NCBI GenBank assembly: GCA_977016875.1
Contig: CDRNST010000175.1
Span: 496,001-560,000 of the forward strand
Origin: Pavona decussata
Lineage: Eukaryota
Length of the DNA stretch: 64,000 bases
Direction: 5' to 3'
The notes beneath the pieces were generated by a model. It searched no databases. It was not told where the DNA came from and worked only from the letters and a program-made list of their open reading frames with translations. Of this stretch, positions 6,926 through 64,000 are shown in pieces. The position numbers and the translations under genes are program-made. Every line of letters begins with the position of its first letter. The first letter of the stretch is position 1.

Positions 6926-7100
6926 ACTCGTTATACTGATACGGCTGGGGGGGGGGGGGGGTCCAATTGATACTAAAAACGTTTGCCGTGGTCTTGGGAG
7001 CAGAACTAGAAAACTTTCTGTGGGATTTTCACAGAAATGGAAAAAATTGCCAACTTATGAACACTTGAGATTTAACAACCAAAGTTCGTAATATTTTAGG

Positions 7101-7244
7101 AAACCAGCTCCTGTAATACTGAGTCAGAAAACCTGGTTAAACTAGCTTCTGTAATATTGAGTCTGAAACCCAGTTAAACTAGCTTCTGTAATACTGAGTC
7201 TGAAAACCTGGTGAAACCAGCTTCTGCAGCATTGAGTCTTAAAC
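7101..7244. repeat. Minisatellite, ~37-38 bp unit x ~3.8
   Basis: Repeated AAAC(C/T)AGCTTCTGTAATACTGAGTCTGAAAACCTGGTT-like units just downstream of the gene A stop codon. Confidence 0.85.
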
Positions 7245-8088
7245 AAGGTTACTTGAATCGCGTCACCAGGAAAAACAAGACATAAAATTAAAAAAATAAT
7301 AATGTCTCGTTTTTCCTGACATAAAAACGTGAAACGGTTATAATGTTAAAGCAACGGAATTTATATTCTGTTAAAAAAGATTAGAGATTGCAATCGTACA
7401 TGCCCAAGTGAAGAAATGTACGGTGTTGAAATGTCAGTTAAGCCTTTCACGCCCAGAGTGTAATCTTTGAATGAAATCCTAAATTGAGACGATTCGTATG
7501 TGAAAGCTACTGGGCATTGCTTTACTGGTGTCAGAAAAACATGGCCAGGTTTTCAGACAGAAATCCTTAGACAAGAAGTGTGCTTAAAACTACGTTAAAG
7601 AGTTCACTAATGCTTGAGCTAAGCTAGTTCTCAGGTGGTTCTAACCACAGTTAAATTCACATGGCAGTTTTAGCTACCTATGGGTAAAATTCCTCTAGAG
7701 TGATCATTCAAATGAAACCGGCTGGGTTCATTCATTTGGTGATATGCTGGCTTCAGGGCCACCCAACGAGAAAATTTAAGCGAATTAAGTGAAATACTTA
7801 GTAGAATGTCCTTTTCTATTTTTTAATGTCTTTTGGGATCCTTTAATAAGTTTATTTGAACAAGCTTTAAAACATTTTCCAGTATAGTTCGATTCGAATT
7901 TCCGAGGCATTAAGTTCACACAAACACAAATTTACCAAAAACAACCGTTGGGCGCCCCTGTCGCTTGTTATATTGAAGTGTTATTTTGTGAAAATTAAAA
8001 AAAAAAAACTGAGCAAAAAAATGAATTGTATTGTAAAAAGAAAAAAAATTGATAAAAGAGAAGAAAAGGATAGCCACAAAAAAAAAAA

Positions 8089-8117
8089 AACAACAACAAC
8101 AACAACAACAACAACAA
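8089..8117. repeat. (AAC)n microsatellite following a poly-A run
   Basis: Direct reading. It explains the poly-C, poly-T and poly-V spurious ORFs at 7916-8184. Confidence 0.95.
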
Positions 8118-41400: not shown

Positions 41401-44400
41401 ATCGTCGTAAGTTCTCTGTGTGGTATTGCCAAATAAAACAAAAGAATTCAATGGGTTGACGACAAACACAAAATTAGCATTTTATGAAATCAGCCAGCGA
41501 CAGCTACAATATTTCAAATCTTATCTGCTTCATAAATACTGGCAACTTTAAAAACAACTCCTAACCGGCATTGAATATTCCGCATATGTTATAGAAAACA
41601 TAAATCTAAGCTAGTTAGTTGAATACAAATTGCTCTATGTGCGAACTCGTGAATGGAATAGGTGAATGTAATGATACATGTATTCCAGATTTTAGACACT
41701 TCCGACACACACATTTGGGACTCAAAAGGGAGGGTTTCAAGGTTTTTTTTTGAAGCGCTGAAGATGACACAAGTTGGAATGAAATATCAACAATACGAAA
41801 ACAATGAGCTAGCTCATACATAGTATTGAGTCTGACTAGACGCGTATACATGTCCGCAGCAGATGTGTTTTTCGTGTATGTTTTGGTTCGCTTAATTCTG
41901 ACCTGCACTGTATTAACTCTGTCAATCCTAATCAGTGCCATTGGCATAAGAAAACATTCACTAATTTGTCCTTGAAAAAGCTTTTATGGAAGTTGCTGTT
42001 TAAAACTGGGCCAAAGCATTCTATGGATCCTCATTGAAGTAAAACAACCAGTGTTGAAGTGAAGTATACAAGAATGGATAAGATGAAGAACAATCTAGGC
42101 TTGGACTGACCTTCAAAACAATTTGAAAAATTTAGGCTTAAGTTTTCAAATCAATTAGGTTGCATTTGATTGACCCTATTCTGGAATAAGAATAAGCAGT
42201 ATTATAAGAATAGCCGTTAAATTTCTCTCTTTAGTTCATTCAACAGTAAATTCTATAGTATTTTATTGCTGTACATAACTTATAGTCAGTGGCAAGTCAG
42301 TTTCAAAACCATCTCTTACCAGTATTATTAAGAAATTAAAAAAAAATTAATCATCTAATTTGTTAAATCAGTAAGGACTTAAAATATTCATTGCTTTGAT
42401 TTAGGCACAGAAAATGCAAATGTAACATTCTTGCATTTTTTCCTCACAAATCAGTTGAAATGTGTTAGCAATGGCCCACTGGGACTACCAGTCTTGGTGG
42501 GAGTATAAATTAAACTTGGATAGGTTTTTTAGTATCGTGGAATAAGAGAGTAAAATTATCTTGTCAACTTGTCACCTATCAGATGCAATTTCTTATTAAT
42601 TCTATGAAAAATGGAGGAATAATCTTAAGGTTATTGTGGTGATTGCATTAGGTTATGGCATAGAAAGAAAAAATGTACAATGTTACATAGTAAAAAATTC
42701 CTCTTCAGGTTATAGCCGGCAACCTTATTTTTTTTTCTCAGGTTTTCATGCAATTTAATCTTTTCCTTAGGGATATAGTATGTGTACTAGCTGTACTGTA
42801 TTAGTACCCAACATGTACATGTACTTAGCAAGGGCGCTGCCTAACAGCCTGCCTAAATTGAAATTTTTCGTAGGCAACAGCCTTGTTTAGGGATACTATA
42901 ATGTTTTTCTCTGAGTCTTATGTTTTTGTTGTTTGATTGGGTCCTGGAATTCAATAAGATGGTCAGATGATCTGCTTGATTGCGTAATTTTCTTTTACTT
43001 CTTTAGAGAAAATCAAACAAGACTTCAGGATGATGGTTTGTCTTCTGCAGCCAAGCCCAGCATTTCATCTGCAGGTATTATCCTTCAACCCACTGTGTAC
43101 TCTGTAGTGTTTATGCATGTGGTTGAAAATGTGATTCAATTAGCTTTTGGCTTTATTTTTGTTTTCCTTTATCTTTGAGGGGTTAGTAAACTGTGGTGCT
43201 GTGTCTGTGGGAAGTAGAAATGTACGTTGAATGATGTTGAAAGAAATGACAAGGATGCATCTAAACCAGTCACTTGACACTTTAATCTGCCTAAATACAC
43301 TTGCTAACACATGCCAGTCTGTGGAATTTCTCCTCATCATGGCAATACAGAAACCTGCAAAACTCTAGAAAAAAAATCATCTTCCAAATTGGCACTCTTA
43401 ATCCCCAGAGAATCGAGACTTTTTTATTCAACTAATTCTTGTTTTTCATGCTACCATGCTCCCACCAATAACACAGCTCCACTGCTCACTTTATAAACAC
43501 GTACAACTGTACAACTCACAATTCCTTGATCCACTCTGATAAAAGGCTAATGCTTGAAACGGCAGCACTCAAATGTCGTTACATGTACAGTGGCCAATTT
43601 TCCCTCTAGTTATCAATTCTGTCTTGATAAAACTAAACATTAATTTTATAGCAAAGCATTTCCATGCGTTTAGTACAGACCAATATAACCGTGTTTGCAA
43701 AAAGTATTTAAATATCAAACCTCTTTGTAATAGGAACATCATGATAGCCTTCTTTGGTGAAATTTATTTCCCACCTTTGACACTGTAGGGCAAATTTTTT
43801 GTGCGCCAATATATTTTTTATTTGCGGTTATCATGCAGTGCTGCACTCTAGAATATACCTCAGCGAAATCATTTGCAAATAATGCATTACACTTACAACC
43901 AAACAGTCATGTTAAAAAGGATGTTACAAATGAATGATTTGGCTCAGAATCTATCAGTTTTTCAAAACAATTGACAAGAAAAGGGGTCTGTGGGTCTCCC
44001 TAATGAATTCCAATTGTCCTTTGAAATAAAATTATTGGTGTATAGTTTAAGGTGCCAGAAACCCTTTTGTTTGTCTGATCTAATTAAAACATTAATTACT
44101 GTAATCCTATTTATGTGTATGTGGATTTTAAGTGTTGTTCTGTTTAAAATTTCTCTTAATCGAATTTGAAAAAAGGTGAAGATGTCCTTCCTGCATTTCA
44201 TGAAAAGGTTTTTCCTCTCATCTGGGTTTTTGTGGCCATGTTAGCATCACACTCGTTAATATTTTTATCTTTGAAGCCTTTTGACTAGTTTCCTTTTTTG
44301 TTTTCTCTACAAGGGAAGTCTTGCACTTTCTGTCGCAAATTAGGGCTAAAGTGGTGCTCAGTGTGCAAAATTCCATATTGCAGTCGGGACTGTCAAAAGA

Positions 44401-47400
44401 GTGATTGGCCAAAGCACAAGCTTGTTTGCCCCCGACAACTGCCAGCTGAGAGCAAAACAACTAATCCACCGACCCATGCTCTCTTGACCACCACCCCTGG
44501 GGATTCTGTGCAACCAAGTGATAATTCCCTAGAGGAGACAGGTTCCCTTCATACACCCCCTGGGGATTCTTTACAACAATCGGAAGAAAGTATGGCGACT
44601 ACTGTGCACAGTTATTCAGACGAGGAGACTGAACCAAGCCCCGAAAATGAAAAGGACCCAATCAGAGTAGATGGTTTTCATGTTAACAATGTTGAGATGT
44701 TTGCTCAGATGATGGGATTTGACCTCAACCAGGTGAAATTTGTCGAAAAAAGTCAAGACACTGATGATTCTGATAAGTCATCTTCATCTTCTTTAGATAA
44801 CAGCACGCCTCAGGACACTTCGTCCAAAGTATCTATGGCTGCACCGACCAGAGATGGACCAAGTCAGCAGACATTGCAAAAAGAAACTCAGGCTGGGAAG
44901 CAAAGCAGTGACACTATAGCAATGGAACCAGTCAGCCCTTTAGCAGCATGTGTGACAGAGCAAGAGAATCATACTCCACAGCAATCAACTTGTGCCCAGG
45001 GTCACAAGCGCTTTTTCATAAAGCACCTCCCAATGGAAAGTGTGCCAAAAGAAGGTTTCTTCAAAGCAGAGGTCACAGTAGTTGAGAACCCAAGCTGCAT
45101 ATGGGCTCATTTGTGCACACCTGAAGCTTTGGAAAGACGTGAGCAACTAAAAAAATCTCTTCAAGCTTCATACTCGAATTCAGTATATGAACACTATGTT
45201 CCAAGTAGTGGTGAAGTGTGTGTGGCCCAGTTTAGTTTCGACAGCCGCTGGTACCGAGTTAAGGTTGATGTTGTAAACAACACTGGAACTTTAAGGGTGA
45301 CATACATTGATTTTGGCAATCATGAAGATGTTACAGTAGATAAGGTGCGTCGTATAACTGACGATCTTGTTGGTTTTCCAAGGCAAGCTCTAAAACTCTC
45401 CTTGCATGGCATAACAAGTAGTTCCCCGACAGGTAGCTGGTCATCTGAAGCAACAACATTCGTCAAAAGTAAAGTTCTAGGCATGGAGTGCAAAGTACAA
45501 GTCGGTGGGCAGCACAATGAGATATTGTTTGTAAAGTTATTTGACCCTGAGGAAACAAATTCTGACTCTACAATCAATGAAAGCTTAATTGGTGCTGGGT
45601 TTGCCAAAACTCGAGGACGACCAACCTCTTCACTGAATACTCCCCAGCAGTACTATTCAGGATCACAGCATGTGCATGGGCATCAGCATTATATGCAAAA
45701 TGAAGGTATAACCAGTAGAGAAAGACTGCCGTTTCCTCACTCAAACAGTTCACAAAGTCAAGACAGTGTACACGAACAGCAAAGAGCCCATGTGAACCAA
45801 GCGAAGAAACCATCTTGTCAGTCAGGTGGCAATGCTTCACCTCCCAAAGAATACAGCAACTCTTCAAGAAACTCCTCAGGACCAGGGATAAAAAAGGAAC
45901 CATTTGAAGCCATTGTCAATGCCATTGTGAATCCATGGGAATTCTATGTACAGAAAACAGATCCACAAATGTTGGTTGGACTTGAGAAATTAATGCAGGA
46001 TTTAAATCGACACCTCAGTGCAGCTCCCTACACAACAAAAGCATCATTTTCCCCTGGTGAGGTATGTGCTGCCAAATTTTCATTGGACAATCGTTGGTAT
46101 CGAGCTGTCATCCTAGAGAAGCTGCCCAGTTGCTTCAGAGTTCGTTATGTGGACTTTGGCAACAGTGAGGTGGTCCAAGGTGCTTCCATTCGTCCATTGC
46201 CTCAACAGTTCCAAAGCCTTCCTCCTCTGTCCCTACAATGTTCTTTAGCTGGTGTAACAAAACCTAAAGGACAGGACTGGAGTTCCGAGGCAGTACAGCA
46301 TTTCAAGTCTCTGGTGTCAAATAAACCATTTGTCTGTTGGGTTGTACATAAACATGGAGTTGTCAATATTGTTGAGCTTCTTGACCCAAGGAGGAATAGA
46401 GAGCAGACTGTAGCAAGCTCACTTATATCTGCAGGTATGTGGGCAATGTTTAACAGTTAAGTTAAACCATCGAAACAGTGTGCGATTTCGAAAACCAAAG
46501 TTAAAGGGCAACTATCGCACCTGCCCATTTCTCTCCCTCTCTTTTTTTTTAACTACCTAAATACTAACATGTGTAAATTTTGCTGTCATTTGATTCGAGA
46601 TGAGTTGTCGTACTTCAAAATTGCTTCCATAAAAGTTTGCAATGCACTTGGCTGTAAAAGGAATCCCAGGCCAAGTTAAGGCTACAGAATATGTTCTTTC
46701 TTTTACTTTACGTTACAGTTGATCCACGTCACGCGTGACCAGTATTTCCAAGAATGAAACGAACATTCGAAATTCTCTTTGTAATGTCCGGATTTGAATG
46801 GAATGTTGAACATTTCTCTGGAAATCTTTCCGAAAAAGACGCATTAACAGGAAAAAAGATTCAAAATACTTAAGGGAAACAATTGTTAGTCTTGAAATAC
46901 GTAATGCTGTAATGTAAAGAAAAACTCATAGCTTTATACTGTCAATAAACTAGGGAAATTTCTATGGGAACTCTAAAATCTCATTGGTGATGTTCGAAAC
47001 TGACATGTAAATTTCAAAACTCCGTTCAAATTTCAAAAATACCGGTCACGTGTGATGTGGATTGACTGTAATTGTAGGCTGACTAGTCCGACAACTACAG
47101 AGGAGAAAGTTCTGTTTGTTTGGTTTTCTTTTGGTACAAGTAAAAGCTGATCACAGAATTCCATTTTCATTTAACGTTTCTTAGGACTAGCGGATGCATT
47201 CATTCATAAAGACGGATCTAAGCACCATTTGGATGGGAAAAGAGGACCATCATTCACTGGTCTACAGCAACAAGTAGTTGGAGGAACACCAGTACCAAAG
47301 AGCCCTGGTGGTGACGTACGGAGGTCCCCATTTAGTCCTCAAAGCTCCCCAAGCAATAGTGAAGGCCCTTTACCTAGAGCCAGGATAGAATCTGCTGTGT

Positions 47401-50400
47401 TTGAACCAGCAATTCAGGCAGCAGCATTGCCCCAAGATTCAAGACTGGATGTTTTGGTGACAGAGGTTGCATCTCCTGAACTCATTTACTGTGGAAGTGT
47501 AGAATCTTCACGGTGGATTGCTAAGTTGACTGAAGACATGAATGAGCATTACAGTGCTGTGAGTTATCCTCCATTTGTTGCACGTGAAAATGATTTCTGT
47601 GCTGCACATTTCACTAAAAGTGGAGACTGGTGTCGAGCCTTTATCAAGGGAACCTCTCCTGATGGAAGAGTATATGTTCATTATGTTGATTATGGAAACA
47701 CTGAATTTGTACCACAGGATCACCTGCGACCTCTCATTGAGCAGTTCAGTTTCAGCGCGTTGCCGTTTTCTGCATTAAGATGTTCTTTGGCAAATGTCAT
47801 TCCCCTTGATTCATCTGGCTGGTCTGATGAAGCTATGTCACATGTTAAAACGCTTCTTCCAGAATATGGTCGCTGTAGTTTGCATGTGGTTGGGCAACGG
47901 AAAGGAAAACTTTTTGTTGACATAACACCAAATGAAACAGGTAAAAGTGTCGGTGAGACATTGGTCAAACAAGGGCTGGCAAGGGTGATCATCAGTAAAG
48001 TAGAGCAACATGACCAACAGAACCAACGTCATCCCACAATGGGTCAGAAAAGTCCGAATGATAATGCCATGGGAGAATCCAGGAATCATACTTCAGAAAA
48101 CCACACTGCATCACCGCAAAGAAGAAATATCGAGAGGCATGACCTAAGTTTGTTAGAGGCCCTTGTCTTTCAACCTGCAATTCAGTCAGCAGCATTACCA
48201 GAGGACAAGTCATGTTTTGACGTGGTGTTAACAGAGGTGTCAAAATCTGGTATGTTCTTTGTACAAGTAGCTGACCGTGACACTGGGCAGAACTTGAAGA
48301 AACTTTCAGACGATATGAACACATACTACCACTCCTCAGCACCAACGTCCTTCCGCCCTCAGCCAAATCAGTTGTGTGCAGCTCTGTTTGCAGAAACCGG
48401 TGACTGGTGCCGTGCCTTAATCAAAGAAGTCATTCCTGATGGTTTGGTAGATGTACACTATGTTGACTTTGGAAACAGTGAGAAGCTCTCGGTGTCTAGT
48501 GTACAGCCCCTCATGGATAAGTTCGCCACTGTTCCATTCTTTGCCTTGCCATGCTCATTAGCAAATATTAGACAACCAGAACCTCCTGGCTGGCCAGATA
48601 ATGTTATGGCATTGTTAAGGGAAAAGGTTCCACTTTCTCAACCAATAAGCACTAGAGTATTGGGCAAACGTCGTGGTATGTTGTTCGTTGATTTTACAAT
48701 TGCAAAGGATCCACCTCAGTCACTGAGCCAGCTGTTGTTGAATGAAGGCTTTGCACAAAGGTTAGTGCAAGAAGGTGATACTCGTAGAGAGCACCAAGGG
48801 GAGCGTTCTCGACCACAAGAGCCATTAGATTCTGGTCGTCAACAGTCAGCAAGCACTACATCCTCTTCTATACAAACGGGAAACTTTGAATCACGTGTGC
48901 TTGAACCTGCTATCCAATCAGTTGCAGATCTTGATTCATTTGATGCCATGTTAACAGATGTCTCATCACCAAGCTCTTTCTTCATTCAAGTTCTACACCG
49001 CGACAAGGTTGAGATCTTGAGGCAGCTCTCAGAGGACCTGAATGCACATTACAATGCAGTAAACTATCCTCCTTTCCAAGCCCAAACCAACCAGATGTGC
49101 GCAGGATGTTTCTCTGGTAGCGGCGATTGGTGTAGAGGTTTTATTTACCAGGTTAGTTCAGATGGCTCTGTGCATGTTCACTATCTGGATTTTGGCAACA
49201 GTGAAGTGCTGCCCTTGTCAAAAGTGCGCCCACTAGAGGTACGCTTCCAGCAGCAACCCCCCATGGCCTTGAAGTGTTCACTGTCTGGAATCCTACCCAC
49301 ACATTCAAGTGGCTGGTCTAACAATGCCAAGGAAGCATTATTGTCGCAAGTACCACTCAATAGCTGTCTGAAAGTCAAAGTGGAAAGAAAGGAAAGCAGC
49401 TTGCTGTTTATCGATACAATACTTCCAGACTCTTCCAGTCAAGAGTCCTTGAGCCATTTTCTTATTAGTCAAGGACTGGCTAGTGCTAATCCACCAGTTG
49501 GCAAGCCAGTCCAATCAGCACCAGCAGCTCCTATTAGCGACAACCGTGTTTATGCTTCAGCAATTTCCTTGGTAGATGTACCACTGGGCACCACATGTCG
49601 GGTCCTAATCAGTGAAGTCCAGCAACCAGACAAGATCTTTTTTCAAGTTCTGAATAGAGAAAATGTCCAAGGTCTTTTGGCTTTGTCAGAAGCATTGAAT
49701 ACCCATTGCTCTACAGTTGATGGCAGCTCTTACAAACCGCTGCTAGGAGAGCTGTGTTGTGCTCAATTCAGCGAGGACCAAAACTGGTACCGTGCTGTTG
49801 TTATGCAAGAACTTAATGAGTCCCAGATGATGGTAGTATTTGTTGATTATGGTAACCAAGCAGCAGTTGCAGTCAATTCCATTCGACGAATCACTCCCTC
49901 TTTCACTCAGCTTCCAATCCAAGCCAGGGAGTGTTTCTTGGTAGGCATTCAACCAGCTTCAGGATCCTCTTGGTCCAGCGATGCTATTAACTTCTTAAAG
50001 GAACGTCTAACTCCTCAAGAAATTGCACCGTTCTTTGCAGAGTTTGAAAGTACAGAGAGAAACGGGTGTTGTTTTGGTGTTCAGTTGTTTGACATAGATC
50101 ATAGTGGGCAGCCAGGGATCTCCATTGGCCAAGATATGATTCAGCACAGCCTTGCTCAAAGGCAAGATGACTCCGCCTGCTCAACGCTTCAGATGACTGT
50201 CCCTAATGTAGATCAATTTGATGTTGTTGTAACAGAGATTGTTCATCCAGGGGAGATATGGGCTCAAGTCCTGGATGCGGAGGCTCGTAATTCACTTGAC
50301 CTGCTCATGAAGGATCTCAACCAGTACTGTGTAGAAGCACCCCTGCCCACCTCCACTCTCCAGCCCGGCCAGGAATGCTGTGCCCAGTTTAGCCAAGATG

Positions 50401-50765
50401 GACTTTGGTATAGAGCGCGTGTGTTAGAAGGTCCGCCATCAGAGCAGATTGCAGTTCAATATGTGGACTTTGGTAACAGTGAATGGTTAGCACCTGACAA
50501 GATAAGATACATGAAAGACGAGTTCTTCAAACTTCCTACTCAAGCGCTCAAGCTGAGCTTAGCAAATATTCGCCCTGCTCATCAGGTTTGGGACCAAGAA
50601 GCAGTAAAGTGGCTGAAAGTGATAGAAAACCGACAGCTAAAGGCCAGAGTTGTCCACCGTTTGCCAGAGTGTTTGGTTGTGTCGCTTGAAGACTGGACTG
50701 TGCCCAATGGTCCTATAAATATAGGTGAACAGTTGATAAATATGGGATACGCTGTTAAGTCATGA
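32408..50765 (+). CDS. TDRD1: Tudor domain-containing protein, TDRD1/Vreteno-like: RRM + MYND zinc finger + 7 extended Tudor domains, ~2189 aa
   Basis: Exons 32408-32682, 37442-37570, 37733-37823, 39640-39734, 40678-40887, 43007-43074, 44314-46434, 47185-50765. All are GT-AG and in phase (6570 nt). RRM (RLFVGRIP...IGFLGY...EAEAAIQKFDG), MYND (CTFC...CSVCKIPYCSRDCQKSDWPKHKLVC), and seven C-x-A/G-x-F...W(Y/C)R...DFGN/DYGN Tudor cores. Start codon and exact orthology are less certain. Confidence 0.85.
33274..36246 (+). mobile_element. 5'-truncated CR1-superfamily (CR1/Crack/L2 group) LINE, apparently young, in the first coding intron of the Tudor gene
   Basis: Uninterrupted ORF2 from ~33292 to 35994. 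3' UTR with AATAAA (36229) and an (AAATG)n tail. Candidate TSD ATGTATA (33267-33273 and 36247-36253). (CCTA)4 at the 5' junction. Confidence 0.92.
33343..35994 (+). CDS. LINE ORF2 (partial APE endonuclease + reverse transcriptase)
   Basis: GVIYRPP, MGDYN, TLIDNIF, SDHLPI (endonuclease). NYRPI, QYGFR, FLDLSKAFD, GVPQGSVLGPLLFLIYIND, LFADD, KFLGV (RT). Confidence 0.95.
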   Translation: MYISNTLNFKVRDDLSTFDEEIFESLFIELRVKGKKSKIIGVIYRPPNNTFNKFEENLTKTLECLNNEGKETYLMGDYNLDILKFNDSVFINDFISLMYASPFFPTITKPTRITDKSATLIDNIFINSPNKNSKRGILISDLSDHLPIFYITMDKLDIKHDLIEQNIRIINKKNFEKNKDELAKTNWENITNLENPQEAYDNFKEQFKEIYDTHLPTKKVTLNKINHKKKPWITKGFLISRKKKNILYKRYLKSPSIFNEQKYKKYRNKFNSLKVIAKKNYYQQQLNTAKNNMKKTWSIINELVGKASKKQNLPSQFKEGVDIITDANEIANRFNKYFINVGPSLSKKIPKTPNSFNKYLNNNYVESIFLDPITTTEVENELKKLNPNKGSGLDDINPRVICEISKLISYPLTFIFNQSIITGIIPNQLKISVVSPVYKTSDKDVFQNYRPIAVLPCFCKVLERLMYRRLISYLNKHHILSDHQYGFRAKRSTQQAIIELVDKITSAIENNEYTIGIFLDLSKAFDTVDHEILISKMEHYGIRGTPLSWFKNYLTNRQQIVKYNNVLSKPNTIRCGVPQGSVLGPLLFLIYINDIHKSSNLFHYTLFADDTNLFFKHKNVNQLLQIANEEISKVSDWLCSNKLTLNTSKTTFMIFKTKGKKLDMHLGVKINQREIEQVKWTKFLGVRIDDKMTWKNHINYISNKTSKLSGIIAKLRHYVNKITLKNVYFTMIYPYFTYCNIVWGSNYASTLKCLHKVQKKIIRLMTFSRYQDSTTALFKQLKILDIFQLNTFLTSLFMYSQRANMLPNTFNNYFVQNRQFHQYNTRSSAKLHIRYTRTNYGKFSLKARGAKLWNNLPDEVKDAKSYFSFKRKVKQIYCSDIST
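38569..38977. mobile_element. TTAA-flanked MITE (Kolobok-like) inserted at an old LINE RT fragment
   Basis: TTAA|GGGGGCAATTTACCTAAA ... TTTAGGGGAATTGCCCCC|TTAA. The upstream flank (~38420-38560) translates EWKEVRVTSIFKLGARNNENNYGPISILS, an RT-adjacent LINE motif. Confidence 0.8.
41089..41910. mobile_element. TA-flanked non-autonomous DNA element (Tc1/mariner-pogo-like)
   Basis: TA|CAGTACAGCTTAGAAATAAGCGACC ... GGTTCGCTTAATTCTGACCTGCACTG|TA. A lone matching end lies near 40205. Confidence 0.7.
46716..47068. mobile_element. TA-flanked MITE in the last intron of the Tudor gene
   Basis: TA|CAGTTGATCCACGTCACGCGTGACCAGTATTT ... AAATACCGGTCACGTGTGATGTGGATTGACTG|TA. Confidence 0.8.
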
Positions 50766-52642
50766 GACTGCAAAAAAGAACAGACATCCAGTGATTTTCT
50801 AGTAGTAGTAACACTATACAAAGCTTCAGCAGATAACAAGGCGACTCTTGTCAAGAGATTGTATGATGAAACATTGCTATTAGCGCAGTGTGGGTCGGTC
50901 AGATAAATGTTAGACTCAGTTTGAAAATGCCCAATTGGAACATTGCGAGGACACGTGATTTTTCCGAGGCGTATCTGCCAGAACGGGACAGTCTTGTCTT
51001 TCTTTAAAGAATTGTGAGCTCAGTTTTCTTGGAGACTGCATAAAAAGAAGCATCCATTAGTAAACTGACTGCATTTTGAGCTTTCTGATAGGCAGCAACG
51101 CAAACCTTTATGTTTGGATTTTTAAAGTTTCGTCACTGTCTTTGCATATTTGGAGCAAACGCAAGAAAAGGCCATATGTTCTGATATTTCTTTGCACCGG
51201 TGCCTTGTTGTTTGCTGAAGGTCTCTTGCGTTTCCGTGGTTTAGAACCAGTCTCCAGATCATGTGGTATGAAATAGTCACTTGCAGCATGTGATATAGAT
51301 CAGTTAGTCTAGTGCATCTGGCCACAACGATCACTCAAATACGCCATGACCAAAACAGAGAGCTGCCTTAGGGTATCGTTAATGGGCCAGAAAGCTTCAG
51401 TTCGACAGAAGTTCGTCTGCTATTAGTATCGTACTTGTTGTTAAGTACCCATGACCTAATTTTGTTTCTCATATCAATTTACCCATCACCCGTGTTGTAT
51501 GTATAAGGAGGTAAAATAATAGTGTTCTCATTTTGTTGTCGAGTTTACGCGTATATACCAGAAATGAAATTGTTTTTTATTGGTTGATAGTCTCAACTGT
51601 TCCTCACCGAAGGTTTTCAGCGAATTCTTTTGAAGTTTTTCGGAATAATATGTTAGCTTATTTATCCAGCTTCCTTGTGCCCTGAAGCAAGTTCATGCAA
51701 AATTATTTTCACATCGCGGTATTCGTTAATTTACTTCACAGCTGCTTTGTTTTAATCGCGGTCAAACGTACAAACGTGTTGTTAATGCTGGTTACATGTA
51801 CTTATACGATGGCGAGACGTTTGCTCCGTAGAGGTTACTGCCGAAAACGAGTGTGTGATTAGTGGAGGTATTTTTTATGTTTGTAGTAAATTGATTAAGT
51901 TCTGATGAAAAAAGGCCAAAATAACAAGAGGTGACAGTGATTACAAGACATTTCGAACCACTTCAACGATGATTGAACACGAAGGCACATAAAAGGGTTA
52001 GTAAGGTAGATGTGCCACTACAATCAGTGGAACCTACCTCGGCGACTGTTTTGCTTGCACCAAAAAAGGGAGACGTCTTTATTCCGCTCCCTTCGCCGTC
52101 GAGAGAACATATGAAAGTAAAACCTTGTTTGTCTTGTTCTTCTGTTGTTCTGTTGACCAGTTATCAACAAATGATACCTGACATTTTTTTCTTTCGCGTC
52201 TTTGTGTTTCTAATACGAATCTTAAATTGATTCCATTGACTGTTTAAATCATGTTATAGTTAATGAGCTTGTTCTCGCTTTATTTACAGTTATAAGGCAT
52301 CAAAATAAATTTATATTAAGCGATTTCCATTAAAATTCTCACGTTGTTCTTATGCAATGTAAGGAGTTATTGTTTTGAATGACGTAACTTTGTATATATT
52401 TTCAGAAATCTAGTTTGCTTTGCCGTTTTACTATAATTTGTGCAATGTCGTGTGCTTCAGTCGGTTGGTAGCCTGGCAACGAGGCGGAAATTCCAAGCAG
52501 GTGTCGTCTAGCGACGAGCACAGGACCCGTTGAAGTGTAAACCCAAGAAGGAAAAATGTTTTGATCTTTGTGCTTGGCCTTGCGTTTGACAGTGCATGCA
52601 TATGACTAATGTGCTTACGATTATGCTTCCTTCGCCGGTATA

Positions 52643-52900
52643 CAGCTATTTCAGTTAACGTTGTCGGTTCAAAGCATAAAGCTGAAAGACAAGACCGAAA
52701 GTTTACGTGGGATTTTTATGAATAAACTCATCAAAATCAGTCATGCCTGGAGAAAACAATAGGTAGTAATTAGCAGTACAATGACCTGCACGTGCAGGGA
52801 TGATTTTGATGAAATTATTCATAAAAAAATAATCCCACAAAACATTGCGGTCTTGTCTTTTAGCTTGATTTTAATCCGACAACGTTAATTGAAATAGCTG
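52643..52900. mobile_element. Palindromic TA-flanked MITE, copy 1
   Basis: TIR CAGCTATTTCAGTTAACGTTGTCGG / CCGACAACGTTAATTGAAATAGCTG. Nearly identical to 57945-58201. Confidence 0.9.
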
Positions 52901-53673
52901 TAAATTAAACGAACAGTTCCCTAAAGGACTTGGGTCAGCTTTAAGTGATTTTTCACTTCACTAACTAACTTTCCTAACTTCCTTTTGAGGTTTGAAGTGA
53001 CGAATAAGAAGCCGCATCACACTGCGTTCACCCAAGACTTGTGTCTGGTTTGGGACAAAATTGTTCGTTTGTCATCTATTTAAAGCTCAGTAGTAGCTAC
53101 CTTTTTGGCAAAATTAAAGGGCTGAAAGTCCCCCTCGGTTTCGTTATAATATTGAGAAGTTAATCAAAATTAAATGGCAACAAATGAAACTTTCTAATTT
53201 TTTTATTTTATTTTATTACATAATTGTTATCTGAAATGCATTTAACTTAAAATGCTAACTTAAAAGTTTAATGCATTATAGATAACAATTATGTTACTGA
53301 GATGATCCTCCCAGTTCGAGCGCCAATTCATGGCAATTCAGTGTGAAATATGGCAGAATGGCATGTATTTCCCTGATCTTTTTTGGATATTTAATAGCCA
53401 AGTTCGTAAACTGGAGGCAGAAAGATAGCACTCAAAACCAATCTTGACAAAAAGAAGAAAACCTTGAAGATTAACATCTTTTTTTTCGTTCTTTTTCCTT
53501 TTTTATTTATCTTCAGTGCTCATAAGTTCACAGTTTCCATCAATCTCCGTGCATCATCCACAGAAAATGTCTTCTGCTCTTTTCCAAGGAGCGTGACCAA
53601 GACGTTTCAAAAGTTTAATTATTAACTACCCCCCCCCCCCCCCCCACTTCCGCATAACGACGTTGCAGCAGGA

Positions 53674-56600
53674 TTATGACATAAGGCGGTCTGCAAGACG
53701 ACTGAAAAAACGCCTCACTCTTCGGATGCTCCCGATTACTCCGCCATAATACCGAAGATTGGAATTCTGAAAAAAAAAAAAAAAAAAACAACTCATAAAA
53801 GAAAATTAATTTAGGTACTTGATGACCCCGTAATAAACAACGGCCATCCAGCAATTTTAGAATGAAGCTACCCACCTCTTCTTTAAGAAAACTATTCTCT
53901 TGAGAGAGCAACTCTCTTTCGTTTTTCAACATTTCCAGCTCCTCTTTCAGTTTTTTGTTGTTTCTATGAATTACAATGCAAAATAATAAAAATTAATTTT
54001 ATACCCCAAGAAGGAAAAGTCAATGCGAAAAGGCACAAATTAACAATTTCTCGAAAATATAGCTTTTGCAGTAAATGAACTGCCTTAAATAATTTGTCCC
54101 ATTCTGAGCCCCCATTTTTATTTCCTATTAATTTTCAACCGGAACTGTAGTCGCATATCATCAAACTTATAATTTTGAAAGAATTTCTCTTATAAGAAAA
54201 AAATACTGCTTTGCCTGTTAACCAAAACCAGTGGCACCAAGGCATCATCGTCTTACTGGACACTAAAATTATGTGTCATTAACGAACGACAACTGAGGTC
54301 CACTTACTTTTCCAGTTCATCACGTGCTTCTTTCTCGGTCTGATCAATGAAAGAAACGATAAACGATTAATTTTTCGACGAAAAATTAAGAAAATGTTTT
54401 GTATGTGGAAAACGCTGAAACTTATACCGGGAGGACAGACAGACTGACTAAAGATGACAAAGTGGGATGGAGAGAACAATTTACGAACATTGTTAGACTT
54501 TTGAACATCAATTCAACCTTGACGAGTCAAGGAGGAAATGCTGATAACAAAAACCACTAAATCCAACATTGAACAGGGATGGGGGCCTGGACCTACCAAC
54601 GATATACGACACTATACGATGGTCACGTGATAGATGATCACGTGACCGATTAACAAGATCAAACTACTGAAGAAGACGTTGAGATAACTTTGAAATATTT
54701 CGTTCCCAAAACTATTTGCTCTGAGTCGGCAATTTTCTTTTATCATCATCATGTTTCCAGGGCAGGAAAATAATCTTTTCAGGAGATGGTAAGGATTCTT
54801 TAATGCAAAGAAATTTAATGTAACTGTCTTGACTGGTAGCTTGGAAATGGCTCATGGCTGCGAACTCAGTATAAACACCACTGCGATTTGCGCCATTTCA
54901 TTATAAAGTTATAAAGCTAACTGCTCAAGTTGTCATCGTTACCTCAATAATCTTGTCTTTTCTGTAGCATTTGTTTGTCAGCGTCTGCATCCTTTTAGAC
55001 ATAGCAGCCTTCTGTTTTTCAGCCTGTTCGCAAATCGTTTTTTTCTGCCCCTTGATCCTTCTAAATTTATTTCTCCACGAGTCAGACTGCTGTGCGAGGG
55101 ACTCTTTCACCTGACTAGCTTCGCTCAACCTAAAAAACGGATTATGTAGTTGGAAAGAATGCTCATTTACTATGGTAACGTTAATTCCTTACAGCCCTCA
55201 ACGCTCTTTAACGCCAAGAAAAAACCCTGTGAGGCTTAAGAGGGTGTTAACCATTTGCCCAAAAACTCCCGGTTTGCTGGAAATAGCAGACCATTAATCA
55301 CGGTTTGCTGGAAATAGCAGTACATTAATCAACACCCACCAACCAGCTTCACCACAACCGCCTTCTTCGTGTATCCGGATAAACACTGGCCCTTGTTACA
55401 AGTATCGCTGTAAAGCCGTTACAGAATAGAAACCTATATTTATTAGCTTACATAAGTTTCTACAATTATGTCCAATGGTAAAAGTGTTAAATGGTAAGAG
55501 CTTTTTTACGCATGTCTTGGGCCAAATTGGAACAAGTAAACCGATGGAGTTCACCTCTTACCCACTGAAAACTGTCCAGTGGGTTTGGAATCAATTTAAG
55601 AAAGGTTTAAAGATTAATTTTACTTACTTTTCCGTGGCTTTCTCGTAACTGGACTTGTAAAAGGCGGCCTAAATTTTACGAAGGAAAAACGTTTTAAAGC
55701 AATGTCCAATACTATCAGCCATGCTACTCGCATACTCCCTCCATCATTAACGTAACAGCACGTGACAACAACAACGTCAACGAATGGCTTTGAATATATA
55801 GTTAAAACATATCTCGTGCTATTCATTAACTTGAAGTAACCTCAAACAAAAGTCAATATCATCGGAGCGTTTGCCTCTGTTGCATTACACTGTAAAATTA
55901 CCTGATCTTCCAACTCATTTATCGTCTCAGTATTTCTGTTGGTGGAAATAGGGCAATGATTTGTTAAAGTATTGTACAGAGTAGACAGAAAGAAAAAATA
56001 ATGATAAATGTTATTCAGAGGGAGGGGAGGGCAGACTATCAGCTTCAAACGTGCATTTTACGTTCTATCTAGCGTTTCTAGGTCCTCAGGGACTTCACGT
56101 GGCATTTGTAATTTAACCTTTCGTGCGCTTTCAAGTTTGCATTCATTATTGTGAATCTATTCCAGCAAGGCTGGTTCAGTTCTCCTCATCTACAGTCAAG
56201 CTCATTTCAACCTATCCGAGGAAAACGTTTGTAAGTTCGCCCTTAGTCCTCAACTTTGCTTATTTTCTTTTCACCCATTGCTGTATTTTATTTCATTTAG
56301 TAGTCGAACCATCATCATCATCATCATCTCAATAAGATTCGTTTTGTCGTTTGCTGCGTTCGAAGTAACCTCGATTCAAATGTTGTGAACATTAAAAGAA
56401 AGTAGTCGGTGTTCACAGAGACCATCCTAGTAACTGCACTGGCCCCCCGGGGGCATTACCAGGCTGTAAAATACTACAATGACCACCGTTAGAATTAAAC
56501 TGAAAAATGTGACCGGAACTAATTGACACTGAAAACTGAAAACATTCTCACTGAAAACTGTCCAGTGGGTTTGGCATGAATAAAAAAAAAAAAGAGGTTT

Positions 56601-59600
56601 TAAGATTAATTTTACTCACTTTTTCGTGGCTTTCTCGTAACTGGACTTGTATAAGGCGACCTAAATTTGACGAATGAAAGACGTTTTAAAGCAACGTCCA
56701 ATACTATCAGCCATGCTACTCGCATATATACTCCCTCCATCATTAACGTAACAGCACGTGACAACAACAACGTCAACGAATGGCTTTGAATATATAGTTA
56801 AAACATATCTCGTGTTATTCATACATACATACACATAATTTTTGTTAAGGCAGGTCGGTTTGTGGCAACCCAAAGGCTGGTGTGGACCTGCCAGGAACTA
56901 AAAAACTGCTTAAATATATGTACAATTCTAAAGAAAAAGTAAAGAAATTTCAAGAACTTAGAAATATAAAAAATCCGTTTGCTTTGATGTTATCACACAG
57001 GCCTCCTTTTCGAATTGAATACCATCTAATGTCTTTGAGGCCTGTCTAAGTTTTTGTTTGAAAAGCTGTAGAGAGGAAGCATCCTTGATGGCTTTAGGCA
57101 GCAAATTCCAGACAATGGGCCCTCTGTACCTTGCACTATTCCTACCAAGATCACTGTTACACCGTACATACGGAAAGTCATTAATACGCCTTAGGTTATG
57201 ATTACTATCAATGTTGCGTTTTGTGAAAAGGGCAGTAAGTTGATCAGGTAAACTATTATGATAATCTCGATACATTATAGAAGCGAGTCTACGTTTGTAA
57301 ATATAGCCTAATGATTTCCATTTAACTAGGTCAAGAACGTCAGAGTCAGGAGTTTCGCTGGGCAGTTTATGGATTAGTTTGGCTGCTTTCAAGTGTTAAT
57401 GTTTCATTCATTAAATGTGGATGGTCATTAACTTGAAGTGACCGTAAACAAAAGTCAATATCATCGGAACATTTGCCTCTGTTGCATTACACTGTAAAAT
57501 TACCTGATCTTCCAACTCATTTATCGTCTTAGTGTTTCTGTTGGTGGAAATAGGGCAATGATTTCTCAATGTATTGTGTAAATCAATTCAAACGTGCACT
57601 TTATGATCAATTGTTGCTAGGTCCTCAGGGACTTCACGTGGCTTTTGTAATTTTTAAAGATCAAAATCTTTCGTGCGCTTTCAAGCTTGCCTTCATTATT
57701 GTAAATCTATTCAAGTAAGGTTAGTACAGTTCACCTTAATAGTTGGGCGTCTACAGTCAATCTCATTTTAACCTATCCGACGAAAACATTTGCAGCTAAA
57801 AATTAATTTCGCCCTTAGTCCTCAACTTTGCTTATTTTCTTTTCACTCATTGCTGTATTTTATTTCATTTCTAGTCGAACCATAATGTTCAAGACTCCCG
57901 GGCTGCAAAAATCTACTATACCCACCGCTAAATTATGACATATACAGCTATTTCAATTAACGTTGTCGGTTCAAAGCATGAAGCTAAAAGACAAGACCGA
58001 AAGTTTACGTGGGATTTTTATGAATAAATTCATTAAAATCAGTCATGCCTGGAGAAAACAATAGGTTGTAATTAGCAGTACAAAGACCTGCACGTGCAGG
58101 GATGATTTTGATGAAATTATTCATAAAAAATAATCCCACAAAACATTGCGGTCTTGTCTTTTAGCTTTATTTTGATCCGACAACGTTAATTGAAATAGCT
58201 GTATATAAGGGTATAAAGCTGAAAAATGTGACCGGAACTAATTGTCACTGAGTTGAGTGAAAACGAATTTGAGTTACGCCAAGCAAAACGAGATTCTGGT
58301 GCCTTTGAGGGTGTTTTTTTTAATCCCGACTCCCAGCTCTGTCATTGTCTTGCGAGAGTTCCCCTTCAAGGGATTATCCCAAGAAATTAATTTTCTAAAA
58401 AGGATGTATGATTACTTTGACTTACTTTGTCGCTGCTTTCTCGTAAGCGTCCTTGTAATAGGCGACCTAAATTTAGAAATAAAATCAGTACTTTTTTTGA
58501 TGTTATGTTCAAAGGGGTTCATATATTCATATTCATATATTTATATTTACAGCAGAATGTGACAACAACAACAGCGATAATAATATAACAAACTGAGAGC
58601 TTTGAATGAGAAATGGCTTGGAAATAAGCATTGTATTTAGTTTAGTGATCAAAGGATATGTTTTGTATTCATCAGTGTGCAAAATATTCTCAAACAAGTC
58701 TTCGCGAGTGCAGTATTTGTCTTTGTTGCATTGCAAGGCTAAATTACCTCATTCTCCAAATCATTTGTCCTTTCAGCATCCCTGTAGGTGAATGTAGAGT
58801 ATAAATGTTCATTAACATACATAGCTTGTTTTGTTAGCAAAACTTTGACAGCGATACGGGGATCATCTCATTACATCAAGATAGACCTTACAAATGGCGA
58901 GACGTTGGTAGAGCAATATTTTTTAAGGACATTGAGTAAGCAAACCCCTTGGGTCGGCTGCTTTTCTGATATGGGAGGATAATACCCGAGGCTAGAAGAT
59001 TGTCCAAAAATTAAACTGTTGCTTCGAAGGCACCTAGGAAATGCTAAGGACAAACTTTTAAGGCGAGGATATTATCATGTGATATACCAGCAAGCCGAAA
59101 AACGGTTTATTTATTTTATAACCCTTGGATGAACCTCTAAGATGCCGATACTGTATTTACCAGTTTTTGAAATAATCCATGAAGTAGTGAGATCATAACT
59201 TTATGAACAGTAAAGCAACGTATTATTAAACATTAAACAAAAGGTCACTGGGAAACAATCCTGAAAAAATTCTAAGTATTCAATACGGGATTTTATTCTC
59301 TTACGTTGTGCTATGTTATCAACGAAGAAACAAAATTAACTTACGTCTCCTTATTCCGCTTGACTCGCATCAGGTATTCCAACTTCAAAAAACATAGAAG
59401 AATAACATGTGAGTCCCACTGTCCTTATTCTAGACAATACTATTCTAGTGCAAGTTAATGTTAAGAAATGTTTTTGGCCAAGGAAATGGATGCTAACTTA
59501 AAAAGGTCGATCTTTACATAAAAATTTGGTAACAGCTTACTGCAGCTCGTCATTTCTTTTAAATTGATTTGATTTTGTCCCACTAGTGTAAGCAAGGCAT

Positions 59601-62600
59601 TTAGATGCAAATTGTCTATTAAAAAAGGGATAATACTCCCTAGCACGAATGTCACATTCCTTTCTCATAACTGTAATATCCAACTTGGATGATCCAATGC
59701 AACAAACTTTACCTTGGAGTTTGATATCTCAGCTCTGAAGAAAGAAAATTAAGCTCGTGGCAGACATTGCTCAGTTTTCTCAAAGAGCGAGTAAATTACG
59801 GCAGTCACCCCTAGCACGAATGTCATATTTCCTTCTCAGAACTGTGATATCCAAATCCAGTGCAACTGAGTTTACCTTGGAGTCGGATATCTCAGTTCTT
59901 AGGAAAGAGAATTAAGCTCGTGGCTGACATTGAAATTGCTCAGTTCTCTCAAAGCGTGGGTAAATTACGACAATCACTCCTAGCACGAATGTTATATTCC
60001 CATCTCAGAACTGTGATATCCAAATCCAGTGCAACTAAGTTTACCTTGGAGTCGGATATCTCAGTTCTTAGGAAAGAGAATTAAGCTCGTGGCTGACGTT
60101 GAAATTGCTCAGTTCTCTCAAGGTGTGGGTAAATTACGACAATCACTCCTAGCACGAATGTTATATTCCCATCTCAGAACTGTGATATCCAAATCCAGTG
60201 CAACTAAGTTTACCTTGGAGTCGGATATCTCAGCTCTGAGGAAAGAGAATAAACAGAAATCTAATATATGACCGTCTGATTCGTTTTTTCGGATGCTCTA
60301 CCACTGAGCTACAGGAGCTAAGGCCATTAAACTAGGTTCATATGACAAACATCCTGTATACTAGTAGGATGCGTGAAAGAAATGTGATGTTATATTTTAA
60401 GCCTGGCCGTGAATAAATGTTACATATGTTTTTTTTAGTCATGTGTATTTTTTAGTCAGTGACACGGGACTTTCTGAATCCGATTTTTATTTTAAATTTC
60501 ATGTTTTTGTGTTTTTTTTTATTGTTAACTTCAATAAGGCCACTTTTTTAAAATAAGTCCTTTGTTGGCAATGATGTTTTAGGGACAGATGTTGGCATGC
60601 ATTTCAGATTTCATGTCACAACAGAGCTGGATGGTGGTTAATCAAGTGCAAGGTAAACCGATAAAGGTTGACTCACCTTCTTACACTCCGCCTTATGAAC
60701 AGCAATTTCGTCGTTTGCTTCTAGCTTTTCCTTCCACAGAATGGAGACGTCCGACTCCAAGGTGGTAATGTGGTTGTCGGCTTTACACAAATCGTCTTCT
60801 TTTGCCTAGAAAGAAAGAACTTGATTGGTTCCTTTCGAAGAATAAAGACTTTTTTAAATAGAATATCAAGTTGTGCTCCGTTTGTTTTAATTACAAAGAC
60901 AACATTTCGGGAATCATCAAATATTATTTTCAACATCCATTTTTAGTTAAACAGGCGCTGTTCAAATTATTTTCAATCCTTTGTAGTTTTGTCAGAGAAT
61001 GGTAGGCACGCATAGTTATTGTTCATTTGCATCTGACAAGCCAAAGATTAAGACATGCTTATTTCATAAGCTTAATTTAATGCAACCATCAAAGCCGTTT
61101 ACCTTCAGGAGTCGGTTAACTTTGCAGCCCTCTTTCTCCATAGATTGTATCATTGCATTCAACGCCTGTTTCTCCTCATTCGTTTTTTTGCACCTATATA
61201 CAGGACGAAAATGAAAAAAAAACAAAAAACATCTAAACATTGAACGTCTAAACATTTTACAGGAAATGTACAAAATGTACCGAATTATCCACAGACATAC
61301 ATGAACCAAACCTCACAAAGAGCAATAAAGTCTCACTAAAACAAAAGATAAAAGTGAATGTGTATTACGTGTCCTCGGCCACGCCTCTCTCTTTAGTCAG
61401 CTTCTTGATCTGCAAAAAAAAAAAAAAAATGGGAAAACGTTATCTTGCAGGCGGTTTTAAATGGTGTAACGTTTTTGCATTACATTGATCCATAGACTCG
61501 TAGACTAACGCATAACATGACTGAAGCAACCTTGTTTGAATGAGAGACTACTTTCAAGAAAATTGTTTAATGTTTTGATTTCGCAATTAGCTTAGGAACA
61601 ATATTGTAATTTTCGGCAGCAACCTTCATATAGTGCATAAAAGCACAAGAGCAGTTTTTATTCTGGCATATAATATATTTCTATTCCCAAGATTTAATGA
61701 AGCACACATTTCTAGAACCTCGTGAAATAAGAAGAAGTGTAAGACTGTAAACGATAATTTCTCGTAGAATCGGCATAAATCATAGTTTACCTTTTTATTA
61801 AGGGAAATATAAATTATCTTATTGCTTTCACTTCATACCGTCTTTTGCTGATGCTTGTCTTTCATCTCTAAATCCCGAATTTTGTTTGACTGTTTTTTCA
61901 ATTTTAATGCAAAAGCTTCTTTTTCTTTTTCCAGTGTATTTTTCCATTGTCTGTGGATAAACATAAATATATCAGGTCGTATATACCATCTTTTTCACTA
62001 GACCAATGAAATTCATAGGGCTCAGTTGAAATAGAGATCACTTTGAAAATAATACTTGTTTCTGATAGGCAGCAAGTTAAAGAGTAATTAGAAATTATCA
62101 ATGTGCAAAAAAAAGAAGAAAATAATGTTTAAGTCCTCTGGTGATATATTTCTGCACTATGTTGCCAATCAGATCAGTATTTTTGCTAGTCGCATTTGAG
62201 AACTTGAATTGCAAGACAATAGATAAAAGGTTAATTTTGGGTGTTTGGAGAAAATGGTAATCAAGCAATAGATGGAGCACGGGGTGGGGGGGGGGGGGGG
62301 GGGGAGGATCTCAGGTATATTAGAGACAGGAATGCGAGACTGACATGGAATTATTAGACCCAGAAAAAGTCATCTTAGGCTAGACCCTGACTAAGAATGT
62401 CCAACGGCGCAGAAAGTAACCCCCAAAAGTCCCGTTTGACATAAAAATGAGAACCCTTACTTACGTCAACAGTTCTTGAAGAGTTTTGATTTTGTTTTCT
62501 TGCTGCTTTGCTACAGCCTCGTAGGAATTCTGATATGGATAGTAACACAAGTTGAACATACTTTTAAACAAAAAAAGAGAAATCAAGAAGCATACATACA

Positions 62601-63381
62601 ACCTAAAAATACATTGTAAAAAGGCGAGTGTACTACGAGAAAAAACCTTATTCAATTGCGTTTCTTTGTGATTACCCTGTCTAGACCGGGGACGACTTTT
62701 GCCCCACCGATTTACTTGTTACAATTTATCAAATATTTTAGCAAACGCCAATTTATCTGGAACAATTTGATGTGGCAGGTCACTATGTACTGAATTTGAT
62801 TTTTCCAAGGCAATCAATTATTAATAGGCAGGTGTCGTAGAAAAATGAAATATAATTATTGTAACTTTAATGTTCTTAGCTCAATTTAGTATTCTTGATT
62901 TCGATGGCGGAACCAAGTAGGAGAAGGTAAAGGAAACGTGGATCGATAGTGGAAGTATATAATGTAGAGTCTGTCACATTCATAATGTTATACCTGAGAT
63001 GAAACTTGCCCAGCAACAGAAACGTCAGCCTGAGTTTGAGTTGCTCTGGTTATCCAGCGTGGCCGTCTGCGGGAAAATAAAGGAAAATGTTGGCTAGTTC
63101 CGCCTCCCAACTCCTATGAAGGTAAAACAGGACTGAATAGTATTTGACACGGGTTATGCATCTTTCGTTTCCAGCATTGCATAATGCCCTATCCTCCCCT
63201 CCCCTCTCTCGGTGGACATTGGCATTTTTTGAAATCAAGCGGACAAATACCCCACTGTGACGGTCATGACGGATGATGGCAGTGAAAAAAAAACATCAAT
63301 TTCTTCGCATCTTGACTTAACTTACACTGGAAGCGGTTGCATCCCTGTATACATTCCATTTGCGTGAGACAAAGCTATGAA
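53674..63381 (-). CDS. Gene B: paralog of gene A, coiled-coil protein, 5'-incomplete, 18 exons visible (409 aa visible)
   Basis: Exons 63381-63326, 63066-62994, 62529-62465, 61950-61839, 61409-61369, 61193-61103, 60805-60677, 59382-59345, 58781-58748, 58466-58426, 57537-57504, 56660-56620, 55935-55902, 55668-55628, 55129-54943, 54339-54308, 53963-53876, 53766-53674. All are GT-AG in one open frame ending RYYGGVIGSIRRVRRFFSRLADRLMS*. Confidence 0.88.
54490..54710 (+). mobile_element. Penelope-like element 3' fragment
   Basis: PTLNRDGGLDLPTIYD matches the PxLNRDxGxxLPxIY end of Penelope GIY-YIG ORFs. It is followed by an ACTGAAGAAG...GAAATATTTCG end motif. Confidence 0.7.
56821..57400 (-). mobile_element. 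3' fragment of a CR1/L2-group LINE with an (ATGT)n tail
   Basis: ORF 56958-57392 (...HNLRR...RNSARYRGPIVWNLLPKAIKDASSLQLFKQKL). It interrupts a site that is empty in the duplicated intron near 55820. Confidence 0.85.
57945..58201. mobile_element. Palindromic TA-flanked MITE, copy 2
   Basis: Near-identical to 52643-52900. The homologous duplicated intron near 56460-56520 lacks it. Confidence 0.9.
59640..60250. repeat. Tandem array of ~169-bp units (3.6 units, 4 hairpins) derived from an inverted copy of the adjacent gene B exon
   Basis: Units start CTAGCACGAATG at 59640, 59811, 59980 and 60149. The last three contain CTCAGAACTGTGATATCC...GGATATCTCAG(T/C)TCT(T/G)AG hairpins (59835-59902, 60004-60071, 60173-60240). 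A degenerate hairpin lies at ~59664-59739. Confidence 0.92.
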
Positions 63382-64000
63382 CTGCAAAAAGATATATAGA
63401 GAAAGATAGTAAATATGAAACTTATCCATCTCTCAACTTTCACTAATTCCGTTTTTAACAAAATCAATATAACAACAACAACAGTTTATTCAGTTTTCCC
63501 ATATGTATACATGGCATTACCGACTTAATAGAGCTATATAATATAAAATTATAGTTTGTATTTGAATAATTAAATTAACATTGATTGTCGTATTTACATT
63601 GAGTCACAAATATAAGCAGCGATTGTCCTACAGACAAAAGGATCAACGTTGTTAAAAAGAAACAAAATTTTTGAATTATTGTCTAGATCATTAAAATATT
63701 GATATCTAACATTTATTTTATTGAAAAATGTTTTGCGTATGTCATTATGAGTCATCATCATTATAATGATGACAAGAAAATAAAAAAATGTAGCTCGTCT
63801 TCAATCTCATTTAAATAGCAAAGAGAGCAGATTCTTAGATTTTCAGTTGTCTTGTTGTGCCTTCCAGTTTCTATTCGTAAATTGTGATTTCCAAGGAGAA
63901 ATTTATTGACTTGTCTCTTGTGGAGTGTATTTTTTATTGGATCTAAAAAGTCAGTTTTGTGACAATCTTTTTTGAAGGTAGAGTAGAATTTCAGTTTTTT

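Follow-up and report, generated by a model that had tools for sequence, protein, structure and literature searches.

An intronic array of hairpins derived from its host gene's own exon in the coral Pavona decussata, a candidate small-RNA precursor cluster

Can a gene give rise, inside one of its own introns, to a hairpin directed against its own exon? A 64,000-nucleotide stretch of the Pavona decussata genome (contig CDRNST010000175.1, positions 496,001–560,000; hereafter the window) raises this question. One intron of a gene that we call gene B holds a tandem array whose units carry an arm antisense to the exon preceding it, and a related structure occupies the corresponding intron of a paralog, gene A. 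We describe the array and its origin and weigh four explanations for it.

In gene B (~53355–63450, minus strand), inspection by eye recognizes seven exons with AG/GT borders, each of which is conserved in protein sequence in gene A (~350–8350, plus strand). Genes A and B, ~45 kb apart, are the two copies of an inverted segmental duplication. Their introns are 73–78% identical; summed over the seven exons, pS is 0.206, dS 0.24, and dN/dS 0.42. The parental exon of the array—129 nt, 43 codons, phase 0–0, AG/GT borders—lies at 60677–60805 (minus strand) in B and at 3114–3242 (plus strand) in A, with 117 of 129 positions identical. Because the exon is phase 0–0, skipping it preserves the reading frame. 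The encoded protein is a coiled coil, and Pfam searches with each exon singly returned no domain. Only one further paralog was detected, on contig C233 (57% protein identity), and it has no inverted exon copy. An exon profile found no relative among metagenome contigs, a protein-level search with the open reading frame of the 129-nt exon gave no candidates, and an exon search of a representative library yielded nothing but genomic read-through ORFs from other corals.

The window holds several other features. Between A and B, at 44298–50765 (plus strand), two long open exons encode a zf-MYND domain (Pfam, E = 3e-8) followed by several Tudor domains (TUDOR, E = 5e-51); this is a TDRD1-like gene of the piRNA pathway. 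An intact 883-aa open frame at 33343–35994 (plus strand), judged by eye, looks like the endonuclease and reverse transcriptase of a non-LTR retrotransposon. Downstream of the array, the large gene B intron (55595–58800) has blocks duplicated within itself (e.g., 55598–55826 versus 56590–56822 and 55823–55975 versus 57425–57577), which also match one block in A (4631–5064). Two 96%-identical copies of a ~267-bp element (52639–52905 and 57940–58206) have internal fold-back arms and 36-nt terminal inverted repeats that are up to 97% complementary; the element looks like a MITE or a foldback element.

The array itself spans 59639–60253 on the minus strand and comprises 3.6 units, each 169 bp long. 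At 59692–60250, Tandem Repeats Finder detects a period of 169 bp (3.3 copies, 91% matches), and a repeat-family search places the unit starts at 59639, 59809, 59978, and 60147, with the last unit ending at 60253; period and unit number agree with the preliminary description of this DNA, which had placed 3.6 such units in the intron after the 129-nt exon. In the minus-strand pre-mRNA the array lies 420–1040 nt downstream of that exon, and it is intronic because the next gene B exon, of 38 nt, lies beyond it at 59348–59385 (minus strand) and closes the intron. If the array acts at all, it acts in this minus-strand pre-mRNA. A 26-nt arm sequence, for which the number of occurrences expected by chance is none, recurs exactly at 59874 and 60043, with one mismatch at 60212, and with three mismatches at 59711; paralog A has one exact copy (3672–3697) on the strand opposite to the B copies. 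Identity among units is 82–96%, with many substitutions between them. Across the 602-Mb genome, the 169-bp unit matches only the two paralogous loci, both on one contig.

Each B unit contributes one hairpin region on the minus strand. Unit 4 (60163–60253; 5′ arm 60216–60237, 3′ arm 60176–60197) is transcribed first and carries one A-to-G change that retains a G:U pair. It is adjoined and truncated by a tRNA-like short repeat (60254–60420, no strand assigned) that has at least 846 candidate copies in the genome and in which ARAGORN called no tRNA. Unit 3 (59994–60084) has its 5′ arm, antisense to the exon, at 60047–60068 and its 3′ arm at 60007–60028, and unit 2 (59825–59915) has the corresponding arms at 59878–59899 and 59838–59859. 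Unit 1 (59654–59752) is decayed, having acquired changes at 7 of its 53 arm positions and an insertion of 8 nt. In paralog A, a single hairpin (3656–3746, plus strand; 5′ arm 3672–3693, 3′ arm 3712–3733) is followed by a partial second repeat (3762–3813, plus strand) that is another copy of the exon's 3′ end. The proposed amplification from one copy in A to four in B is thus correct for the four (3.6) units of B but not for A, which holds 1.4 units: the hairpin and the partial repeat.

Homology to the exon extends well beyond the arms. On the plus strand, every B unit holds a sense-like exon copy of ~73 nt. The long inverted copy in A (3579–3708, plus strand), which is antisense in the A pre-mRNA, aligns to the exon over ~125 nt: exon positions ~29–129, the GTGAGT splice donor, and ~20 nt of intron. 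This alignment scores 85, whereas the highest score among 300 shuffles is 37. Since the homology runs through the splice donor into the intron, the copy arose by inverted duplication at the DNA level and is not a processed copy. Directly beside the antisense copy lies a ~35-nt fragment in the exon's own orientation, and the two together form a fold-back structure. The first 14 nt of the 5′ arm all match the exon, and over its 26 nt there are 22 matches (exon B site 60738–60763, minus strand; exon A site 3156–3181); the other arm has the exon's orientation and agrees with it at 24 of 33 aligned positions. The earlier reading of one arm as antisense to the exon, of the other as a diverged sense copy, and of the hairpins as products of inverted duplication of the host exon is borne out on all three points. 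As in target-derived hairpins, the homology, splice donor included, exceeds any small-RNA site, and an origin by inverted duplication of the host exon is well supported by these alignments. The partial repeat on the other side of the A hairpin was likely the substrate for unequal crossing-over: two direct repeats flanking a hairpin provide a route by which its number could rise to four units in B.

Predicted hairpins of ~70 nt form in B units 2–4 and in the single A copy, and folding is stronger on the host-gene strand. In host-gene sense, the free energies are −36.2 kcal/mol for unit 2 (z = −7.9), −36.9 for unit 3 (z = −7.6), −43.1 for unit 4 (z = −6.8), and −42.9 for the A copy (z = −7.6); unit 1 reaches −27.6 kcal/mol (z = −3.4), and unit 2 on the opposite strand −29.8 kcal/mol (z = −4.4). 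The upper stem consists of 7 + 9 + 4 bp separated by two single-nucleotide mismatches, the lower stem adds 7–10 bp, and the MFE index is 0.98–1.16. The whole array is predicted to fold into separate local hairpins. In size, stem, and stability (about −31 to −43 kcal/mol, z = −6.8 to −7.9), the hairpins resemble miRNA precursors (~60–80 nt, with a mostly paired stem of at least ~20 bp). The preliminary description had assigned a ~68-nt hairpin to every unit, which holds for units 2–4 (~70 nt, z about −7 to −8); unit 1 has decayed. No Rfam family matched (best 17–18 bits against cut-offs of 70–80), and the arm sequences were absent from the literature searched.

Sequence conservation was compared between the A copy and B units 2–4, that is, between two paralogous loci only, and the B units exchange sequence with one another and are not independent. 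On this footing the two stem arms are identical at 52 of 53 positions, the loop at 12–13 of 15, the spacer at 61–62 of 72, and the downstream flank at 20–21 of 24. Arms differ from loop, spacer, and flank combined (95/111) with Fisher P = 0.013, in a small sample of 1 versus 16 differences. No more than one change among 53 positions would be expected with a probability of 7e-5 if the arms evolved at the synonymous rate (pS 0.206), 0.003 if they changed as fast as the non-arm part of the unit, and 0.036 if they changed as fast as the parental exon. The check that had been proposed, whether stems are more conserved than spacers, thus comes out in favor of the stems between paralogs A and B, and arms more conserved than loop and flanks are the pattern associated with miRNAs. 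In unit 1, the loop is still the ancestral one, common to A, despite the changes in its arms. Three transitions in the upper stem all retain G:U or A:U pairing on the host strand, and no compensatory double changes were found in the stem among the A and B copies. Because both arms are nearly identical while the 15-nt loop between them carries two to three differences, a single gene-conversion tract is an unlikely source of the identity. The pattern suggests selection on the hairpin; with two loci and B units that exchange sequence, it is suggestive rather than conclusive.

We tentatively favor the reading that the array is a cluster of small-RNA precursors, of the miRNA or hairpin-RNA kind. 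On this view, before A and B diverged, the 3′ part of the 129-nt exon would have been duplicated into the downstream intron as a fold-back, with one sense and one inverted copy. In the host pre-mRNA, this insert would form a ~70-nt hairpin whose 5′ arm is antisense to the exon. Unequal crossing-over between two direct repeats of the exon's 3′ end, one on each side of the hairpin, would then have raised the number to four units in B, and selection would have retained the hairpin as a small-RNA precursor. The intron would thereby house a young cluster of miRNA or hairpin-siRNA type, like those proposed for hexacorals, and small RNAs from the 5′ arm could still pair with the exon in A and in B, although no longer perfectly. 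From the observed anatomy, origin, folding, genome uniqueness, and excess arm conservation, we infer that the hairpins are processed to small RNAs and that these may silence A or B.

How well could such small RNAs pair with the exons? The 22-mer that stem geometry indicates in the 5′ arm forms 18 of 22 Watson–Crick pairs with either exon (22 of 26 over 26 nt). Against exon B, positions 5, 6, and 12 are non-Watson–Crick and position 11 is a wobble; against exon A, position 6 is a wobble and positions 11, 12, and 20 are non-Watson–Crick. In this register, mismatches fall in the seed or the centre. Among all 21–23-mers, the best register scores 4.0 on a plant-type scale, reached against exon B with an unbroken run of 14 pairs (positions 8–21). 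Between A and B, 4 of the 26 exon-site positions have changed, and none in the arm; exon sites that diverge while the arm stays unchanged are unlike a maintained guide–target pair. Near-perfect complementarity of the kind seen in young plant MIR genes and hairpin RNAs was not found, and both exons lie outside the three-mismatch range. The earlier expectation of near-perfect pairing therefore fails, with four non-Watson–Crick positions in the 22-mer and 4.0 as the best plant-type score. Targeting of the A and B exons by the array is possible but weak, to judge by these pairings.

Wider targeting fares no better. The "other family members" named as targets in the preliminary description come down to one further paralog, that on C233, which pairs poorly with the 5′ arm. 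The genome search for paralogs of better complementarity retrieved this paralog alone, and at up to three mismatches genome-wide the 5′ arm has no other site apart from one transposon or repeat copy. Near-matches to the 3′ arm elsewhere in the genome belong to two unrelated repeat families. One is dispersed and has a 22-mer at two to three mismatches from the arm (C81:378115, C47:367089, C65:1848925, C115:550428, C224:904740, and C272:167665); the second occurs on C45, C20, and others. Being confined to two families, these near-matches are at chance level. Among metagenome contigs, a 19-nt arm pattern gave 16 hits, all attributable to chance, and a two-arm pattern gave one hit among prokaryote genome contigs (a bacterial MAG), again attributable to chance.

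A narrower form of the small-RNA reading is that a fast-evolving, recently duplicated gene makes intronic guides against its own mRNA and that of its paralog, as an autoregulatory or paralog-conflict circuit. We regard such a circuit as improbable.

The strongest alternative to a small-RNA precursor is an inert relic, in which a neutral fold-back duplication of the exon expanded in tandem and the arms stayed identical by chance, by short ectopic gene conversion, or by both. The decay of unit 1 and of the complementarity to the exon is what such neutrality would leave behind, as is a stem without compensatory covariation. The non-arm part of the unit is 86% identical between A and B, somewhat above the neighboring intron (73–78%), which could mean an old conversion, and the contrast between arms and surroundings comes from a small sample of 1 versus 16 differences. 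However, that contrast (52/53 versus 95/111, P = 0.013; P = 7e-5 at the synonymous rate) is not what neutrality predicts, conversion would have had to skip the 15-nt loop between the arms, and the full stem is retained in three of four B units and in the A copy. On balance we think an inert relic rather unlikely, though a serious contender.

A second alternative places the function in the pre-mRNA itself. Intronic editing-site complementary sequences and exon-masking antisense elements provide a complement of an exon in the intron downstream of it. At the coral locus, the intronic antisense might likewise pair with the exon, or the hairpin might bind a double-strand RNA-binding protein, and either could tune inclusion of the 129-nt exon or its A-to-I editing. 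Like those elements, the coral intron complement has a very stable predicted duplex with the exon: −90 kcal/mol in A and −84 to −85 kcal/mol in B units 2–3, with z about −9 to −10, and the exon–antisense pairing could extend over ~100 nt. The phase 0–0 exon would keep the frame if skipped, and the antisense copy in A covers the 5′ splice site. Unlike those elements, however, the coral exon lacks co-variation or co-conservation with its complement: its sites changed at 4 of 26 positions with no matching change in the arm, and it is the local hairpin that has been conserved rather than the exon-pairing segment. Gene B, moreover, has lost the segment that covers the splice site to a repeat insertion, and a local stem that forms within ~20 nt should outcompete an exon 400–1000 nt away. 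We accordingly consider a cis-acting structure unlikely, more so than an inert relic.

An assembly artefact, or membership in a transposon or satellite family, might be suspected of a tandem repeat with a high-copy short repeat directly adjoining it but is very improbable, since units only 82–96% identical do not resemble a collapsed or duplicated read pile, an identical open frame across units 3–4 and the repeat junction occurs on two ENA contigs, and the genome has no copy of the unit outside the two loci. A transposable element or satellite had been considered as a candidate class and was rejected: instead of many dispersed copies, only the two paralogous loci match the unit. A protein-level search with the open frame that runs through the unit returned only this genome's own ORF.

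Read as a small-RNA precursor cluster, the locus can be set beside three known systems. Drosophila hairpin-RNA (hpRNA) loci were reportedly described by Okamura and colleagues in 2008. They are like the coral array in being inverted target duplicates that sometimes form tandem hairpin arrays, and they are tied to fast-evolving, recently duplicated genes. Their stems are usually longer and yield 21-nt siRNAs via Dicer-2, whereas the coral stems are miRNA-like, at ~20–24 bp, and the dN/dS of the coral host pair (0.42) is not clearly a signature of conflict. Drosophila hpRNA loci include tandem-hairpin ones and silencers of young duplicated genes (PMC10317233). A second comparison is with plant MIR genes that originated as inverted duplicates of their targets (Allen et al. 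2004, cited in PMC7713132). Young plant MIR genes, too, are fold-back copies of a target exon with one arm antisense to the target, but they are usually separate loci with near-perfect pairing; the coral hairpin pairs at 18 of 22 positions and is intronic in its own parent.

A third comparison is with other hexacorals. Fridrich et al. (2020) found extended target homology in 11 of 138 Nematostella miRNAs and proposed for Hexacorallia a path from inverted duplication of a target through hairpin siRNA to miRNA (PMC7713132). The coral locus would fit the early-to-middle part of that path. As in the hexacorallian miRNAs of that study, its hairpin shares homology with a protein-coding gene well beyond the 22-nt site. 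The coral hairpin differs in its particulars: it lies in the parental gene's own intron, it is tandemly amplified, and its origin is legible down to the splice donor. For the hexacorallian miRNAs, small RNAs and Argonaute loading were shown; the coral hairpin is a putative precursor.

If the stems do yield small RNAs, the array would show with unusual clarity how an animal miRNA-type gene can be born from its own target, for its history is still readable: the parental exon, the splice donor carried along with it, the point of fold-back, and the later tandem amplification. The two paralogous copies also permit a built-in test of selection. Were the self-targeting circuit real, it would resemble the Drosophila hpRNA suppressors of young duplicates and be the first of its kind in a non-bilaterian, with its birth from the host exon still readable. 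More broadly, a small-RNA precursor at this locus would give a reef-coral example of plant-like miRNA birth in cnidarians, a model that has so far rested on Nematostella statistics, and would raise the question of what purpose an intron-encoded guide against its own host exon might serve.
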